Positions 30,461 to 62,881 of a stretch of 64,000 nucleotides of DNA are shown here, in pieces. The stretch lies in sequence record NC_019526.1; one strand, given 5' to 3'. How positions within the stretch are numbered: the stretch's first letter is position 1; every line of letters starts with the position of its first letter. The position numbers and the translations under genes are program-made. The notes under the pieces are model-generated. The model ran no database searches. It worked only from the letters and a program-made list of their open reading frames with translations, and was not told the origin of the DNA.

Positions 30461-33400
30461 ATGTATATTGATGCATATATGGAACGAAAACGTAGTGGTG
30501 ATGTGTTGCACGTAGTAGAACGAAAAAATGGAAAGCGTATTCTACGAGAATTACAACCACTATATGAGTATTATGTAGAAAATGTTAATGGTAATCACAA
30601 AACCATTTATGGTACTAAAGCAGAAAAACTGGAATTCGATACTGCATCTGAACTAAAACGAAGTATAGAAAAAAATGTATCAAATGGAATCAGAACATTT
30701 GAAGGTAAATTCAATGTTGTATTCAAAACACTTGCTCAATATTATATGGGTACTGAATCACCAGATTTAAACATTGTATTCTTCGATATTGAAACTGATT
30801 TTCATAAGAAATTTGGTTATGCATCTCCATCTAATCCCTTTAATCGTGTAACAGCCATTTCATTATATCAGTCATGGACAGGTAAAGATTATGTACTTAC
30901 CCTTGCTCCAGAAGATATGACAACAACAGAAGCACAGGATATTGTCAATAAACTAAATGCGGAAACTAATGATCCAAATTCAAGTGTAATTCTTTATACT
31001 GATGAAAAGGAAATGTTCATGGATTTCTTTAGTCTAATTGATGATAGTGATGTATTATCTGGATGGAATAGTGAATTTTTTGATATTCCTTACATGATTA
31101 ACAGAACCAAAATTATCTTCAATGAAGCCATGACTGCTCGTTGGTGTTTATGGAATAAAAAACCAATTGCACGTGAAGCGGATAACTTTGGTAAATTGGT
31201 ACAGACATATGATTTGGTTGGTCGAGTTCATCTTGATTATCTTGCTCTTTATAAGAAACACGCTGCTCAGGTAGAGCAATCGTATAAACTTGATTATATC
31301 GCAGAAAAAATCACAAAAGAAAATAAAGTACAGTACGAAGGATCTCTGGATAAATTATATAGAGAAGATTATATGACTTTCCTTCGATATTCTAAACAGG
31401 ATAGTATTCTTCTCAAAAAAATCGATTCTATTCTTGACTATATTAGTCTGCATAACCGACTTGCACATAAAGAATGTGTTCTCATCAAAACTACTATGGG
31501 TTCAGTAGCACTGATTGACACTTCAATTATCAATCTAGCACACAAACGTGGTGAAGTGGTATTTGATAAAAAAGAAGAGGTTGAAATTGATCCAGAACTT
31601 GAGTACTATGATGGATACGATGATGATGAAGACAATAATGATTCAAAACTCAGTGCAAAAGCAGCAGGTGCATGGGTACAAGACCCAATATTAGGATTAG
31701 TTGAATACTTAGGTTGTACTGACTTTAACTCACTTTACCCAACTGTACTTCGAACTCTAGGAATGAGTACTGAATGTATTCTTGGGCAAATTAGACAAGA
31801 TTATACAGAAAAATACTTAGAAGAACGTATATCTGAACAAAAAGCAAAGTCTAAATCAAAATCATTTGAACCGGAGTGGACAGCAGCATGGCATGGTTTA
31901 TTCGCCGCTGTGGAGTTTACGATGGTACATGAAAGAAGTGAAAAACTACTGACTATTGATTTAGAAGATGGCAGTTCTTTTCAGGCAACTGGTTCACAGT
32001 TATATGATATTATATTCAGTCCAGAAAGTACTATTGTACTTAGTGCAAATGGAACACTATTTGATAAATCAAAATATGGTGTTATTCCAGATATCCTAAC
32101 GCAATGGTATTCTGAGCGTAAAGCCCAGCAAAAAATGGTAATTGATTATAAACATATGGCTTCAGATGGTTGGGAAATCCCATCACCTGATATTGTTCAA
32201 AATATGTTTTCACAATTCAGTACTAAATCATACTATAAAACAAACCTTCATGAAGAAGACCCAGTATATCTTCTACGTAAAGCTATAGGTGATAATAATC
32301 TTGAAGAAATTGCTCGTCTTATTGTAGAAAATAATTTAGTACTAAAAGATGGACGTATTTTTTGTTCAGATGAGGATAAAAAATATTTCAAACAACAAAG
32401 TGCTTTCTGGAAACAAAACCAACAAATTCGTAAAATTCTTCTAAACAGTCTTTATGGTGCACTATTGAACAAAGGAAGTACTTTCTTTGATAAACGACTT
32501 GGACAATCAGTAACATTAACTGGCCGCTCAATGACAAAACACATGGCAAGTCGCATTAATGAAATTACTACTGGGGTTTATAATCACACTGGTGGTAGTG
32601 TTATATATGGTGATACCGATTCTGTGTACTTCAGCGTTGTTCATTATTTAAAAGAACAAAACATTCCATGTGATCTAAGTAAAGAAGAGATTGTGGATAT
32701 GTATATAAAAATTGGCGATGAAGTGGGTGAATCTTTTCCTGAATTTATGGACAAAATGTTCAATACTGGAATTGAAAAAGGTAAAATTGTAGGTGCTGAT
32801 CTGGAAATGGTTGGCTCCCGAGGGCTGTTCCTTAAAAAGAAACGTTATGCTATACTGAAATATTGGGAAGATGGGTTCCGTAAAGATGTTGATGGTAAAC
32901 CTGGTGAAATCAAAGCAATGGGGCTTGAGATTAAGCGTTCAGATACACCAAAATACATCCAGAACTTCCTTGAAGAGACTTTAATGGCATTACTGGTAGG
33001 GGAGTCCGAGAGTGAATTAAAACAGCGTGTACGCGATTTTAAGGCGGTATTTAAGGACAAACCAGCACACGAAAAGGGTTCACCTAGAACAGTGAAAAAT
33101 TATTCAAACCTTGAAGCTGATTTTAAAAATACTGGTAAATGTCATGTAGGTCACGTCCTCGCTGGTATTCAATGGAATATGTTACGCAATGCATATGATG
33201 ATAAAACTGTGCCAGAAGTTACTGATGGTACTAAAGTGATTGTATGTGATTTGAAACCAAATCCACTTGGAATTACTAAAATTGGTTATCCAATTGATTG
33301 TGCTGAGTACTTACCTGAGTGGTTCCTTGAATTACCGTTCGATACAGATAAAATGGAAGAAATTATCTTAACTAAAAAACTGGATAATATCTTTGGTATT

Positions 33401-33463
33401 CTTGATATGGATATTGGTATTCATGAAAAAAGTACTGCACAGGATTTTGGATTTTTCTCGTAA
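30461..33463 (+). CDS. gp43: Family B DNA polymerase
   Basis: Exo motifs FDIET and GWNSEFFDIPY; polymerase motifs DFNSLYP, KILLNSLYG, YGDTDS, KKRY. Confidence 0.97.
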   Translation: MYIDAYMERKRSGDVLHVVERKNGKRILRELQPLYEYYVENVNGNHKTIYGTKAEKLEFDTASELKRSIEKNVSNGIRTFEGKFNVVFKTLAQYYMGTESPDLNIVFFDIETDFHKKFGYASPSNPFNRVTAISLYQSWTGKDYVLTLAPEDMTTTEAQDIVNKLNAETNDPNSSVILYTDEKEMFMDFFSLIDDSDVLSGWNSEFFDIPYMINRTKIIFNEAMTARWCLWNKKPIAREADNFGKLVQTYDLVGRVHLDYLALYKKHAAQVEQSYKLDYIAEKITKENKVQYEGSLDKLYREDYMTFLRYSKQDSILLKKIDSILDYISLHNRLAHKECVLIKTTMGSVALIDTSIINLAHKRGEVVFDKKEEVEIDPELEYYDGYDDDEDNNDSKLSAKAAGAWVQDPILGLVEYLGCTDFNSLYPTVLRTLGMSTECILGQIRQDYTEKYLEERISEQKAKSKSKSFEPEWTAAWHGLFAAVEFTMVHERSEKLLTIDLEDGSSFQATGSQLYDIIFSPESTIVLSANGTLFDKSKYGVIPDILTQWYSERKAQQKMVIDYKHMASDGWEIPSPDIVQNMFSQFSTKSYYKTNLHEEDPVYLLRKAIGDNNLEEIARLIVENNLVLKDGRIFCSDEDKKYFKQQSAFWKQNQQIRKILLNSLYGALLNKGSTFFDKRLGQSVTLTGRSMTKHMASRINEITTGVYNHTGGSVIYGDTDSVYFSVVHYLKEQNIPCDLSKEEIVDMYIKIGDEVGESFPEFMDKMFNTGIEKGKIVGADLEMVGSRGLFLKKKRYAILKYWEDGFRKDVDGKPGEIKAMGLEIKRSDTPKYIQNFLEETLMALLVGESESELKQRVRDFKAVFKDKPAHEKGSPRTVKNYSNLEADFKNTGKCHVGHVLAGIQWNMLRNAYDDKTVPEVTDGTKVIVCDLKPNPLGITKIGYPIDCAEYLPEWFLELPFDTDKMEEIILTKKLDNIFGILDMDIGIHEKSTAQDFGFFS

Positions 33464-47914: not shown

Positions 47915-48736
47915 ATGACAAATAAACTTGAAGAATTTGTGAATTCTATTGCAGTACTGGATACTGAAACCAATGGTATTCTTGAAACCGATGAAATTAT
48001 AGAATTTAGTATTTCATTTCCAGAATCATTGAATGATTCTATTGATAATATAATGAATTACACCAATCGTTATAAACCACAAAAAGAAGTGCCAGCTATA
48101 GCAAGTTCAGTTCATTTTATTACAAATGAAGATTTGGAAAGTTGTGGAACTTATGATTCTGAATTACCAACAATTGATGCATTAATGGGAAGTCGTCAAT
48201 ATTATGTTGGTCACAATGTACAGTTTGATCGTAGAATGATGCGTCAATGTGAAGATAAATATCGCAGTGAACCTTCTCAATATCTATATAAAGATAATTG
48301 GATTTGCACTTTACGATTAGCCAAAAAACTTCATGCAGAAGATTCTGATTACGATAATATGACTCTAAGTTACTTATGGTTTAAACTTGGGTGTTATAAG
48401 GGGCATCGTAAAGTAGAAGCACATAGTGCACGTGATGATGTTTTTATGTGTTACTCGGTGCTAATTAAATTAGTTGAAGAATGCATTTCACTTGGAATCA
48501 TTGATCCAAATAATGATATTGGATCTCAAATTATTCAGTACTGTAATACTCCTATTATCTATGAAAAAGTAACATTTGGTAAACACAAAGGAATGGATTT
48601 TTCTGAATTACCAATGGATTACCTTATGTGGATGATTACAAATAGTGACATTTTAAATACTGACAAAGAAGATTGTGATATGGATTTGGTGGCAACTTTT
48701 GAGTACGAATATAACAGAAGGACAAACGCCAATTAA
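47915..48736 (+). CDS. DEDDh 3'-5' exonuclease (DnaQ/ExoX-like)
   Basis: LDTET, VGHNVQFD, AHSARDD, C-terminal FGKHKG...LPMDYLMW. Confidence 0.9.
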   Translation: MTNKLEEFVNSIAVLDTETNGILETDEIIEFSISFPESLNDSIDNIMNYTNRYKPQKEVPAIASSVHFITNEDLESCGTYDSELPTIDALMGSRQYYVGHNVQFDRRMMRQCEDKYRSEPSQYLYKDNWICTLRLAKKLHAEDSDYDNMTLSYLWFKLGCYKGHRKVEAHSARDDVFMCYSVLIKLVEECISLGIIDPNNDIGSQIIQYCNTPIIYEKVTFGKHKGMDFSELPMDYLMWMITNSDILNTDKEDCDMDLVATFEYEYNRRTNAN

Positions 48737-52815: not shown

Positions 52816-53181
52816 ATGAGTATATATAAACAAACTATCAATGAAGGTAAAATTGATAATCTCTATCACAGAAATGTAACTAAACCAGAAGTACAGAGTA
52901 TTAAAAAATCATCTGAACTTAAATTGCTCAGAAGTGGAAGTGTAACTGAAATAACACTGGATGATAAAACATTTCAGGTTTATGATGCACATAAGATTCA
53001 TAATATTATTACGTTCGTTGAACGACATGAAGATAGTATATTCAATTTAAGACAAGATAATAATAATCTTAAAAAACAAATACAAATACTATCAAAGAAT
53101 ATTCAAACATTACAAAGTACTGTTACAAAATTACAGGAACAATTAAAAAATGCAGGATTCAGTTCAAACAACTACTTATAA
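52816..53181 (+). CDS. Hypothetical coiled-coil protein
   Basis: 121 aa, C-terminal heptads. Confidence 0.7.
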   Translation: MSIYKQTINEGKIDNLYHRNVTKPEVQSIKKSSELKLLRSGSVTEITLDDKTFQVYDAHKIHNIITFVERHEDSIFNLRQDNNNLKKQIQILSKNIQTLQSTVTKLQEQLKNAGFSSNNYL

Positions 53182-53791
53182 AAAAGCAAGAACCGACATT
53201 GACATTGATGTAAAAGATGCAAAAGAAGTAATAAGTATTCTTCCTTGTACAAGGAGTACTGAAAAAATTAATGAAAGTGGGTTAATCGTTCATAATAGTG
53301 GAGTTCATTTTGATAATATTCCTGTTGATCCTGTTACTGGGTATAGTAGTATTGAATATAAAAAAGCCGAACAATTAGGGTATCAAAAAGTTGATATCCT
53401 TTCTAATTCGGCTTATAAGTACGTGAGAGACCGAGAACATTTAATTGAACTCGTTAATAAAGAACCACAATGGGATTTATTGCTGATACCAGAAATAGTA
53501 GAAGAATTGTCACATATTAAAAAACACATTTCACTTCTTAATGTATGGAAACCACAAAGCATAGATGAACTGGCAATGTTTATTGCCATGATTCGTCCGG
53601 GGAAATACAAATGCCAAAGTATGAATTCATGGGATGAAGTACGTAAAGAAATATGGGATTACAGTACAGTACCAGTGCAGGCAGATGGTAAAAAGGTAAT
53701 GTATTTCAAAAAACCACATGCTTACGCGTATAGTTTTATGATTGTGGTGCAATTGAACGCATTAGTTGAACACATTATGTCCTCTTCTTGA
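53150..53791 (+). CDS. Miniature DNA polymerase III alpha (DnaE)-like catalytic domain
   Basis: DIDID, HNSGV, KVDIL, AMIRPG, KKPHAYAY correspond to DnaE palm/thumb/finger motifs. Confidence 0.8.
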   Translation: MQDSVQTTTYKKARTDIDIDVKDAKEVISILPCTRSTEKINESGLIVHNSGVHFDNIPVDPVTGYSSIEYKKAEQLGYQKVDILSNSAYKYVRDREHLIELVNKEPQWDLLLIPEIVEELSHIKKHISLLNVWKPQSIDELAMFIAMIRPGKYKCQSMNSWDEVRKEIWDYSTVPVQADGKKVMYFKKPHAYAYSFMIVVQLNALVEHIMSSS

Positions 53792-54131
53792 GGGCAACAT
53801 TTCTTCGTTTAATTCGTTTTTGCGGTAAATCACTTAAAGATGTTTGTGGTCCACTGATGAATTTAATTTGTGGTGTATCGAAACGCTTAGTATAGTTTTC
53901 AAATTTTTCCATTTCTTCCTGGAAAAATAAACATACTGGAATCAGCCTATTACTCTGAAACCACCAGTCCTCTGCTAACTGGAGTATTTCCTCTCTTTCT
54001 TTTTTAGACATAAGATCCAAGCAATAGAGTGTTGTGTATTTGGTACTCTTTATTTTAATTATCCCAATGTAGGTATTTTCGTTGTGGTCGAGTACTGTAA
54101 TGTATTCGGGAAATGCTTGGTATTGATTCAT
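53775..54131 (-). CDS. Hypothetical late protein
   Basis: 118 aa, GGAAG RBS, TATAAATA on the minus strand at 54170-54177. Confidence 0.72.
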   Translation of the reverse strand: MNQYQAFPEYITVLDHNENTYIGIIKIKSTKYTTLYCLDLMSKKEREEILQLAEDWWFQSNRLIPVCLFFQEEMEKFENYTKRFDTPQIKFISGPQTSLSDLPQKRIKRRNVALKKRT

Positions 54132-54191: not shown

Positions 54192-55169
54192 ATGTCTCAT
54201 AGTGGCGTATATATGTACCCATATAATCAGGAAGTATCATTAGGAAATTTCAATATGCCATTTCATAATGAGAAAATTGTTATATACAGAGGTGCGAATA
54301 ATAATTTATCCTTTACAATCCATAATGCTGATGGAAAATATACAAAAATAAAAGACAATGAATATTTGACATTCATGATCTTCGATGCAAGAAATAATAG
54401 TATTTTATTTAATACTGTACTTGATAAACAAATTCCATCGTGGTTATCTGAGAGTGGTCAGGCACGACAATCACTTGGTAATAAAGAAAAAGTTTATTAT
54501 GGTTGTGTTGTTCCTGCTGGTGTTATTCAGGATACTAGTCCAGGTTTAAAATATCGATGGAGTATTGTCAAAACTACTATTGATGGTTCTCTTCTTGAAC
54601 CCACTCAATATTTGTATACTGGACTTGATTATGAAGCATATGGTGAATTACAAATTTCAGATAAAGCTGCACCTGTGTTTGTCCCCAGTACTGAAGTTTC
54701 TAAGGATAAAAATTCTTCATGGAAGTCTATCAAAGATAGTTACAGAGAAGTTATCAGTGATTCTTTAAAAGGTGAATATGATGTAATGTGTACTTCTCCA
54801 TTAGCAGCACAAATGCAATATGGGTTAGTTGATGGATTGAGTACAATTGCACTTTATACTGATAATTTTATTGGAAGAATACAATTACAAGGTTCACTTG
54901 AAAATAATGTACCGTCTGATGCAGAGAATTACAAATGGTTTATTATTAAATTAGATTCAAGTGAATACATTCAAAATAGTATAGATGAAAATGGATTCAT
55001 TATTCCTATGAATGGAATACAGACATTTAATTTCAAAGGCAATTATATGTGGTTAAGAGTTGTGGTATGTATTCCACCAATCGAGTATACTGTTCCTTAT
55101 GATTATAATACTGTGCGTAAAGAATACGATCCATTAAAAACACTTCCAAAAATATTGATTCGTCGATAA
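54192..55169 (+). CDS. Probable structural protein
   Basis: 325 aa, beta-rich, late-type CATAAATA at 54140-54147. Confidence 0.7.
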   Translation: MSHSGVYMYPYNQEVSLGNFNMPFHNEKIVIYRGANNNLSFTIHNADGKYTKIKDNEYLTFMIFDARNNSILFNTVLDKQIPSWLSESGQARQSLGNKEKVYYGCVVPAGVIQDTSPGLKYRWSIVKTTIDGSLLEPTQYLYTGLDYEAYGELQISDKAAPVFVPSTEVSKDKNSSWKSIKDSYREVISDSLKGEYDVMCTSPLAAQMQYGLVDGLSTIALYTDNFIGRIQLQGSLENNVPSDAENYKWFIIKLDSSEYIQNSIDENGFIIPMNGIQTFNFKGNYMWLRVVVCIPPIEYTVPYDYNTVRKEYDPLKTLPKILIRR

Positions 55170-61147: not shown

Positions 61148-62881
61148 ATGAAAAAATATCTGAAAAATTTAGATACAGAAACAGAAAATCTATTTAATGA
61201 AATTCGTTCATTACTAAGTAACAAAAATAGTAAATCATGGCATACCTCAATAAATGCTTCTGGAAGGGAGCATTTAAAAAACGCGGTACTCAGAGTCTAT
61301 CCAAGTAGTGATTTTTTATTATCAGAAGCATTAAAACTGATTATCAATCAAGAAGAACCACCGTATGCAGTATGTGGTAGAAAATGTAAGTATTTTAATG
61401 GTCAGTATGATAGATATTGTTCATTGGGTGTCAAACCCAATAAAAACACTTATTGTGAGAAGTGCAATAATCACTGGCGAGAAAAGAAAAACAAATCCAC
61501 AAAAGAAAACTGTCTAAATCAGTACAATGTTGAACACCCTTTTCAGCGAAATGATGTGAAAACAAAAGTACATGAAACTAAAATACGAAAATACGGTACT
61601 AATTATAATAAAATAATTTCAAACAAATCATTCAGTACTTATTATAATAAAACTGGATATTCATGTCCATTGAGTAATCCAGATATACAACAAAAAATTA
61701 AAGAAACTAATATTAAAAATTATGGATATGAAAATCCCGGTTCATCTCCATTAATTGTACAAAAAAGAAAAAATACCCAGAAGAAATTATATGGTCATGA
61801 ACATTCTATGCAGAATGGTGATATAAAACTAAAGGTATTGATTAAATCTGCCACACAGAGAATGGATAGTATAAATTCAAAACTTGAATTTACTAATTTT
61901 ATTCCTTTGTTTGATATTAGTGATTTAATTGGTTTGGATACATATAACAAAATGCCATACTGGTGTAATACACATGGTTTATTTTATTCATGTAGTAATT
62001 ATAAAATTATATGTAATGAATGCACTCCCGTTCATATAAGCACACAACACAAAGAGATATTAAATTTTATAGAAAATCTTGGTATTGAATGTGTAACGAA
62101 TACACGCTCTGTTTTAAAAAGTACTATGGAATTGGATATTTTTATACCTGACTTGAATGTTGCAATAGAAATTAATGGTATGTACTGGCATAGTACTGAA
62201 TACAAAGAACGACTGTATCATCAAAACAAAATGCTGGAATGTAAAGAACATGGCATTCACTTAATACAGATATGGGAAGATGAATGGAATACCAAACAAG
62301 ATTTGGTTAAATTTCGTTTGATGAATGTATTAAAATGCTCCAGTACTATATATGCAAGAAAATGTAAAATAAAAGAAATCAATAAAAAAGAATGTGATAA
62401 TTTTATTAATACATACCATATCCAAGGTTCTAGTTCATCATCTATTAGAATTGGTTTATATTACGAAAATGAATTATATGCAGTTATGACATTTGGAAAA
62501 TCCAGATTTGATAAAACTGTTCAGTATGAATTGATACGATATTGTTCAAAAAGTACAGTCGTTGGCGGTGCATCTAAATTATTAAAGTACTTTGAGAAGA
62601 AATACAAACCAGTGTCGTTGATTTCTTATGCAGATGCGTGTTGGAGTACGGGTGATTTATATATTAAACTTGGTTTTACATATAATGGATTAACTGAACC
62701 TGGTTATTTTTATTACAAATCAAGTACTGGTAGAATTTCAAGGCATCAATGTCAAAAGAAAAAACTAGTCAATCAGGGATATGATGAAAATTTATCAGAA
62801 TATCAAATATGTACCACTGTACTTAAATATAACAAAATATTTGATTGTGGTAATTTTAAATTCACTAAATATTACATATAA
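61148..62881 (+). CDS. Homing-endonuclease-like protein (KYGxxN repeats, PD-(D/E)xK/Vsr-like nuclease, C-terminal ARKC domain)
   Basis: ELDIFIPDLNVAIEINGMYWH...LIQIWEDEW, IYARKCKI, ISYADACWSTG. Confidence 0.75.
   Translation: MKKYLKNLDTETENLFNEIRSLLSNKNSKSWHTSINASGREHLKNAVLRVYPSSDFLLSEALKLIINQEEPPYAVCGRKCKYFNGQYDRYCSLGVKPNKNTYCEKCNNHWREKKNKSTKENCLNQYNVEHPFQRNDVKTKVHETKIRKYGTNYNKIISNKSFSTYYNKTGYSCPLSNPDIQQKIKETNIKNYGYENPGSSPLIVQKRKNTQKKLYGHEHSMQNGDIKLKVLIKSATQRMDSINSKLEFTNFIPLFDISDLIGLDTYNKMPYWCNTHGLFYSCSNYKIICNECTPVHISTQHKEILNFIENLGIECVTNTRSVLKSTMELDIFIPDLNVAIEINGMYWHSTEYKERLYHQNKMLECKEHGIHLIQIWEDEWNTKQDLVKFRLMNVLKCSSTIYARKCKIKEINKKECDNFINTYHIQGSSSSSIRIGLYYENELYAVMTFGKSRFDKTVQYELIRYCSKSTVVGGASKLLKYFEKKYKPVSLISYADACWSTGDLYIKLGFTYNGLTEPGYFYYKSSTGRISRHQCQKKKLVNQGYDENLSEYQICTTVLKYNKIFDCGNFKFTKYYI

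Follow-up and report, generated by a model that had tools for sequence, protein, structure and literature searches.

How a protein of only 213 residues comes to carry the active-site motifs of DnaE, the alpha subunit of bacterial DNA polymerase III, in a phage with a complete DNA polymerase of another family is the question raised by ORF124 (open reading frame 124) of the Klebsiella jumbo phage vB_KleM_RaK2. The gene lies in a 64-kb stretch of DNA, here called the window, that corresponds to positions 62001–126000 of the phage record and is 100% identical to JQ513383/NC_019526. The first-pass annotation of the window described the ORF124 product as a DnaE core and a minimal C-family nucleotidyltransferase that might act together with the coiled-coil and zinc-finger proteins encoded next to it. 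The analysis reported here points to a different answer. Most probably, Rak2-like (group 2.2) jumbo phages have a heterodimeric, minimal nucleotidyltransferase of the C family (Pol III alpha-like); ORF124 would encode its C-terminal half and a second gene, ORF162, its N-terminal half, and its likely task would be short-patch templated synthesis in aid of the family-B DNA polymerase (PolB). The split mini-Pol III is already known, because the system was described in a computational study by Iyer, Anantharaman, Krishnan, Burroughs and Aravind (Viruses 2021;13:63, PMC7824862, section 3.4.1 and Fig. 3b).

The reading frame and its five motifs lie where the first-pass annotation had placed them (Table 1). 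The motifs are conserved and colinear with E. coli DnaE, in keeping with the view that the protein derives from the C family (DnaE type) and retains the catalytic carboxylates together with the fingers motifs. The RefSeq label is 'DNA polymerase', and the PHROG family matched, phrog_11778, is also named 'DNA polymerase' (E 5.9e-104). In a profile search of the PDB, DnaE1 was the sole match, with four motifs colinear. Single-sequence searches of the PDB and NCBIfam gave nothing useful; there was no NCBIfam match, and the best PDB match, 1iuk, was a chance match. When the profile of the C-terminal half was aligned by hhalign to the single E. coli DnaE sequence, the alignment was correct at a low probability (3.8%), and the assignment of this half was accordingly based on structural matches and the colinearity of the motifs.

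Conservation of the aspartates in homologs was a check that had been set beforehand. In an alignment of 43 sequences of the ORF124 family, D16, D18, D20, H48, G51, K80, D82, R149, P150, H190 and Y194 were invariant. Among 100 full-length representatives at 50% identity, D16 and D18 were each kept in 98, D20 in 96 and D82 in all 100; the corresponding counts were 100 for K80, 98 for R149 and 96 for H190. Judged from these alignments, chance resemblance of the motifs is ruled out. The family comprises 335 clusters at 90% identity and 555 clusters at 50% identity (E ≤ 0.001). The pairwise ratio of nonsynonymous to synonymous substitution rates (dN/dS) across relatives was 0.014–0.028 where dS was unsaturated and ~0.045 (up to 0.046) between RaK2 and phages GAP32 and CBB, indicating purifying selection.

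The AlphaFold model of ORF124 was confident, with a predicted local distance difference test score (pLDDT) of 93.3 and a predicted template modelling score (pTM) of 0.81. When this model was compared with the PDB, the top 12 matches were all Pol III alpha chains and the remainder was noise. In GAP32, Muenster and Erwinia phages the C-terminal half is labelled 'putative membrane protein', a label that was rejected because the confident model is that of a soluble, DnaE-like alpha/beta fold. The GenBank and RefSeq names of the two halves vary among relatives ('hypothetical protein', 'putative membrane protein', 'DNA polymerase', 'DNA polymerase III alpha subunit' and 'DnaE-like'), and the polymerase and DnaE-like labels bear out the remark in the first-pass annotation that similar fragments are annotated in related jumbo phages.

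The remainder of the palm was found in a distant gene. A whole-genome search of RaK2 with the DnaE palm model PF07733 identified ORF162, which scored 35.1 bits and passed the curated Pfam cut-off of 23.9 bits. ORF162 aligns to residues 322–396 of E. coli DnaE (hhalign probability 86%, E 5e-6), and its R140, G141 and S142 correspond to DnaE R362, G363 and S364. The loop that contains them (G139, R140, G141, S142 and S143; GRGSS) is invariant in the alignment of N-terminal halves. The C-terminus of ORF162 is the equivalent of DnaE FERFLN, a motif immediately ahead of the PDxDxD strand in DnaE, and ORF124 starts ~15 residues ahead of the PDxDxD equivalent; the palm is therefore cut at about DnaE residue 395–398. 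Residues 1–95 of ORF162 matched neither Pfam nor the DnaE sequence and could be what remains of the PHP domain or of the linker between that domain and the palm, or else a new element. By homology, ORF124 is only the metal- and template-binding half, and the nucleotide-binding half of the palm is ORF162. The term DnaE core was thus apt for the metal-binding half but not for a whole catalytic core, and the proposed standalone enzyme gives way to a two-gene split enzyme.

The two halves are inherited together. The N-terminal half occurs in 93 and the C-terminal half in 96 phage records, with matching host-genus tallies, and for each half over 500 clusters (50% identity) and no fewer than 590 IMG/VR loci were counted. 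The genes are 34 kb apart in RaK2, 44 kb in PA5oct, 15 kb in XacN1, 116 kb in SCTP-2 and 182 kb in Atu_ph07, the range among isolated phages being 15–224 kb. When ten large IMG/VR contigs were subjected to a reciprocal test, both halves were present in seven, including all three complete genomes, at distances of 34–280 kb; the three contigs without both halves are 36–79% complete. Phages of Klebsiella, Pseudomonas, Agrobacterium, Xanthomonas and Salicola all have the palm split at the same point.

Furthermore, the halves are joined in nature. Three fusions of 375–376 residues (P0178, P0390 and P0391), from separate assemblies, and a divergent one of 336 residues (P0263) carry the N-terminal half followed by the C-terminal half in one reading frame, with a linker of ~10 residues. 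Residues 92–206 of P0178 aligned to positions 302–417 of the DnaE superfamily model TIGR00594 without a break over the junction (E 7.6e-15). The fused homolog was folded from an alignment in which ~10 residues of the rows of the C-terminal half were shifted, giving a model with pLDDT 89.6 and pTM 0.87. Comparison of the models with DnaE and PolC structures was the second check set beforehand, and both the ORF124 and the fused models matched such chains; for the fused model there were 16 (E 8.5e-8 to 4.4e-5), the next match having E ≥ 4. Neither of the two checks spoke against the DnaE assignment. VIA-align superposed 320–354 of the 375 residues on DnaE/PolC with Z of 13–21, the alignments beginning at residues 9–18 of the fused chain and ending at approximately E. 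coli residue 773 (Taq 830).

The origin of the fusions was examined in a tree of the C-terminal half, rooted at the midpoint, in which the branch of P0263 is long. The fused forms require two origins: they formed one group in 0 of 200 bootstrap trees, and well-supported branches force this result. Each fused lineage is nested within clades of split forms, and the tree would most simply be read as an ancient split followed by two later re-fusions. Other unusual forms were seen in the course of these searches. The metagenomic sequence P0253 (233 residues) contains the first ~100 residues of the C-terminal half (DVDIDM...KLDVLNN) followed by unrelated sequence, which, judging from the RluA motif, resembles the C-terminus of a pseudouridine synthase; P0253 may be a chimeric contig or a true rearrangement. 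P0403 and P0404 (540–551 residues) matched the fused protein weakly and hold PHP and DNA_pol3_alpha domains in a length of just ~545 residues; they may represent further C-family polymerases that are truncated or split, forming an intermediate between DnaE and the mini form.

A model of the complex of RaK2 ORF124 with ORF162 was also calculated. The complex scored 0.91 in three runs, and the best of 3 controls scored 0.00. Of 80 solved complexes, 58 attained this mark, as did 2 of 110 mismatched pairs; these counts are only a rough guide here, as own alignments were used. In the predicted interface, which has ~200 contacts, the GRGSS loop and the C-terminus of the N-terminal half pack against the DIDID strand, the K80 region and the KKPHAYAY helix. 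The predicted complex supports the binding of ORF124 to ORF162. What the data show directly is that the pair is homologous to the catalytic core of DnaE, where the palm is split, that the halves are co-inherited, that they are under purifying selection and retain the active-site residues, and that an interface between them is predicted with confidence.

The module was then compared with known polymerases. DnaE and PolC (e.g. 2hnh, 2hpi, 3e0d, 5lew and 3f2b) share with it the Pol-beta-like palm, the GS phosphate-binding loop, the three carboxylates, K553 and the RPGP and KSHA motifs in the same order, and the palm with its GS loop and three catalytic aspartates is found only when both phage halves are taken together. 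Whereas DnaE and PolC have ~1100–1450 residues in one chain, the phage module has ~385 in two and lacks the PHP domain, the thumb, ~80 residues of the mid-fingers, the distal fingers, the clamp-binding HhH domain, the OB fold and the tau-binding domain. The equivalents of D405 and H511 are 28 residues apart (D20–H48) rather than the 106 of E. coli, and the thumb (~78 residues) is therefore deleted. The spacing P150–K187 is 37 residues, compared with 117 for E. coli P640–N757, corresponding to the loss of ~80 residues of the mid-fingers, and all DnaE sequence past E. coli residue ~773 is absent from the fused model; the first-pass annotation had likewise noted that most of the fingers are missing. 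Its statement that the PHP and beta-binding domains are lacking held for the whole RaK2 genome, in which neither PF02811, found in 14 of 14 control genomes, nor PF14579 (HHH_6) had a match. Both ORFs are too short to hold a clamp-binding HhH domain or an OB fold, consistent with the annotation on this point as well, although the OB fold was not separately searched. On the sequence evidence, the split module would be a C-family polymerase catalytic core in kind but not an orthologue of DnaE or PolC.

The possibility of protein trans-splicing was also considered. In cyanobacteria, DnaE-n and DnaE-c are encoded by distant genes and joined by trans-splicing; that split lies in the fingers, and split-intein halves flank the break. 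The phage system resembles it in deriving a C-family polymerase from two distant genes but differs in that the split is inside the palm and intein halves are lacking. There is no extra sequence at the C-terminus of the N-terminal half or at the N-terminus of the C-terminal half, and no intein family was detected in Pfam scans. Intein trans-splicing was rejected, as the break leaves no space for intein halves: the N-terminal half ends after the FERFLN equivalent, DIDID follows within ~15 residues of the start of ORF124, and the linker of the fusions is short.

From this evidence we infer the physical assembly of the heterodimer, its catalysis, its substrate and its biological role. ORF124 and ORF162 would be translated separately, with no intein, and would dock non-covalently into a module of palm and partial fingers. 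ORF124 would supply the beta-strands with the metal-binding residues D16, D18 and D82, together with K80 and the RPG and KxxH fingers motifs that line the active site of DnaE. By analogy with DnaE and Pol-beta-like enzymes, the three aspartates would bind two metals. In these enzymes, a loop of the DnaE R362/G363/S364 type holds the triphosphate of the incoming nucleotide; ORF162 would provide helices and the GRGSS loop, which would position the incoming nucleoside triphosphate in the same manner. Low processivity is to be expected because the module has neither a thumb nor a clamp-binding domain. The most likely activity would be short-patch, low-processivity, template-directed DNA synthesis that assists the PolB replisome, for example in gap filling, repair or primer extension. 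Such synthesis beside PolB fits the synteny of the UvsW-to-primase-helicase block around ORF124, the position of the ORF162 gene ~1.1 kb upstream of the gp44 clamp loader and the presence of PolB in five of five diverse carriers of the mini-Pol III. In one IMG/VR genome that carries the split mini-Pol III (record G003), PolB matches at ~115.7–119.4 kb fall in two open frames of 616 and 567 residues, which suggests a split or interrupted family-B polymerase there.

Several points weigh against this interpretation. The thumb, most of the fingers and all known DNA- and clamp-binding domains of DnaE are absent, and templated synthesis on duplex DNA is for that reason not assured. The first ~95 residues of the N-terminal half have no assigned homology and are modelled with lower confidence (pLDDT 61–86 in the fused model). 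Against the curated DnaE models, the fused P0178 scored 54 bits, far from the cut-off of 434 bits, and the N-terminal half at most 30.7 bits. The high score of the complex may reflect a memory of the DnaE fold in the structure-prediction model rather than binding. Moreover, biochemical, genetic, transcript or proteome evidence for assembly or activity was not found in the literature searched, nor was any experimental follow-up of the split system, which agrees with the earlier remark that no function is established. The sequencing runs that contain the locus are wastewater metagenome contigs only, in which transcripts are not separable from virion DNA.

The absence of the thumb, of most of the fingers and of the HhH/clamp-binding and OB domains would also be expected if the heterodimer were active but not as a template-directed DNA polymerase, catalyzing instead the tailing of DNA or RNA ends, the extension of RNA primers only or the formation of a nucleotide-derived product. 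The core fold is common to non-templated Pol-beta-like enzymes such as the CCA-adding enzyme (5hc9, 3h38), to which model residues ~104–278 correspond as a minimal nucleotidyltransferase core, and the phage already has a complete proofreading PolB. However, the resemblance to CCA-adding enzymes extends over ~100 residues with Z of only 3.5–3.8, far below the values for DnaE/PolC, and these generic enzymes lack the C-family fingers motifs. RPG, KxxH and K80 occur specifically in C-family polymerases, and 91–100 of the 100 representatives retain them; the replisome context (primase-helicase and clamp loader) likewise argues for templated synthesis. This alternative was judged unlikely. We consider equally improbable the broader proposal that the ~385-residue, two-chain module is an active, specialised nucleotidyltransferase outside auxiliary replication and repair, serving in primase hand-off, end tailing or the synthesis of a non-templated product, in which case the split could regulate when the enzyme forms.

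It is very unlikely that the 213-residue ORF124 is a self-sufficient minimal nucleotidyltransferase, possibly acting with ORF123 (coiled coil) and ORF122 (C2H2-like zinc finger), as first proposed. ORF124 does hold all three carboxylates and two fingers motifs, it folds confidently alone in silico, and ORF122 is its conserved upstream neighbour in RaK2, PA5oct and Atu_ph07. Nevertheless, the palm is incomplete without the GRGSS half that binds the nucleoside triphosphate, which is a separate, strictly co-inherited gene, and the natural fusions unite exactly the ORF124-type and ORF162-type halves. ORF123 was rejected as a partner: it carries the label of a virion structural protein, and the ORF124 locus of PA5oct, Atu_ph07 and XacN1 contains no homolog of it. 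ORF122 is a member of a phage-only family of C2H2 zinc-finger proteins; no DnaE-like features were found in it by Pfam scan and family search, so that it could not be upheld as a hidden DnaE domain, and its synteny in three lineages is part of a large conserved block that includes a virion protein and is lost in XacN1. A functional link of ORF122 or of ORF125w to ORF124 is possible but unsupported.

It is scarcely credible that the two ORFs descend from a captured host dnaE as decaying or non-catalytic relics that serve only as scaffolds or regulators, or have no function: their reduction relative to DnaE is extreme and the N-terminal half was called 'truncated' in earlier phage papers (PMC5259590), but the selection data effectively exclude decay, and the near-invariant catalytic residues, the abundance of both halves, the one split point over five host genera and the two re-fusions also speak against it.

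A DnaQ-like exonuclease, an attractive candidate for an epsilon-like partner, is present in RaK2 (ORF117), CBB, Atu_ph07 and XacN1. However, ORF117 was rejected as an obligate epsilon-like partner, since a DnaQ-type domain was detected in only one of five diverse IMG/VR carriers. In E. coli, epsilon binds to the PHP domain of alpha, and the absence of this docking site from RaK2 also weighs against ORF117 in such a role.

ORF124 is situated in a replication and recombination module in the order SSB, UvsX, endonuclease, ORF117, UvsW, ORF119–123, ORF124, ORF125w (on the reverse strand), ORF126, gp61 primase and gp41 helicase (Table 1). The complete PolB and the primase that the first-pass annotation had reported alongside ORF124 are both in the window. 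The UvsW-to-primase-helicase block is syntenic in RaK2, PA5oct and Atu_ph07. ORF125w (118 residues; phrog_11637) shares 17 nt with the 3' end of ORF124, and PA5oct and Atu_ph07 have a counterpart in the same position and orientation (tblastn E 5e-22 and 1e-16, respectively). Genes labelled as virion structural proteins (ORF123 and ORF126) are scattered within the replication module; homologs of ORF126 hold the same position in Atu_ph07 and in PA5oct, where the product was identified as a structural protein by electrospray ionization tandem mass spectrometry (ESI-MS/MS). A gene for a Hef-like homing endonuclease lies a few kb 3' of the primase-helicase genes in RaK2, and in PA5oct such a gene is found immediately 5' of the UvsW-to-primase block.

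Table 1. Positions of ORF124, its motifs, its partner gene and neighbouring features of phage RaK2
Feature	Window position	Record position	Strand	Description
ORF124 (YP_007007279.1)	53150–53791	115150–115791	+	ATG to TGA, 213 residues; C-terminal half, putatively Mg2+/template-binding
DIDID strand (D16–D20)	53195–53209		+	D16/D18/D20 equivalent to E. coli DnaE D401/D403/D405 (PDFDVD400-405); first two are catalytic carboxylates
HNSGV	53291–53305		+	Equivalent to DnaE HAGGV511-515, strand after the thumb in DnaE
KVDIL	53387–53401		+	K80/D82 equivalent to DnaE K553/D555 (KFDFLG553); D82 is third catalytic carboxylate
AMIRPG	53585–53602		+	Equivalent to DnaE fingers motif FRPGP638-642; weak Pfam PF17657 match
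KKPHAYAY	53708–53731		+	Equivalent to DnaE fingers motif NKSHSAAYA757-765
ORF162 (YP_007007317.1)	Beyond window	148852–149370		172 residues, N-terminal half; 34 kb downstream of ORF124; PF07733
PolB (gp43-like)	30461–33463		+	Complete family-B DNA polymerase, 1000 residues, exonuclease and polymerase domains
ORF117	47915–48736		+	DnaQ-like 3'-5' exonuclease; possible partner, co-occurrence inconsistent
ORF123	52816–53181			Coiled coil; virion structural protein label
ORF125w	53775–54131		-	118 residues
ORF126	54192–55169			Virion structural protein label
Primase (gp61)	~55.2–56.3 kb
Hef-like homing endonuclease	~61148–62881	123148–124881

The system described by Iyer et al. (PMC7824862) is, as far as its description in the section cited goes, the same as the RaK2 pair, with no essential difference. 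In that section, a split minimal Pol III alpha was assigned to group 2.2 jumbo phages, including Atu_ph07, as two standalone proteins from distant genes, the N-terminal half binding the nucleoside triphosphate and the C-terminal half binding Mg2+ and the template. It was said to accompany PolB and to have no other Pol III domains, and the suggestion was made that it may cooperate with PolB in the synthesis of one strand or in repair, and that it may model the ancestral enzyme. RaK2 shows the features given there: two distant standalone genes, an N-terminal half with GRGSS, a C-terminal half with the carboxylates and fingers motifs, PolB alongside, and neither PHP nor HHH_6 in the genome. Both halves were also found in Atu_ph07. 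Relative to that section, the present analysis adds the re-fused forms with their two origins, a heterodimer model checked against controls and a weak linkage to DnaQ-type exonucleases. The mapping to E. coli residues, the dN/dS ratios and the abundance in IMG/VR are likewise absent from those passages. Earlier genome papers noted a 172-residue 'truncated' alpha subunit in CBB (PMC5259590) and a pair of alpha and epsilon in Atu_ph07. In the RaK2 paper PolB (gp100) is the sole polymerase mentioned, and neither half is singled out in the main text of the omics paper on PA5oct.

Taken as a heterodimer, the ORF124-ORF162 pair bears on what a polymerase of this family requires. C-family polymerases are the bacterial replicases; they usually exceed 1100 residues, and for a long time their role was believed to be limited to cellular replication. 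Strongly constrained by purifying selection and plentiful in viral metagenomes, a core of ~385 residues in two chains would define the minimal C-family catalytic unit. If the module were instead a specialised nucleotidyltransferase, it would be the smallest functional C-family catalytic core and would bring a new activity to the family. The finding also raises the question of why a phage with a proofreading PolB retains a second, bacterial-type polymerase core, and why it keeps that core split.

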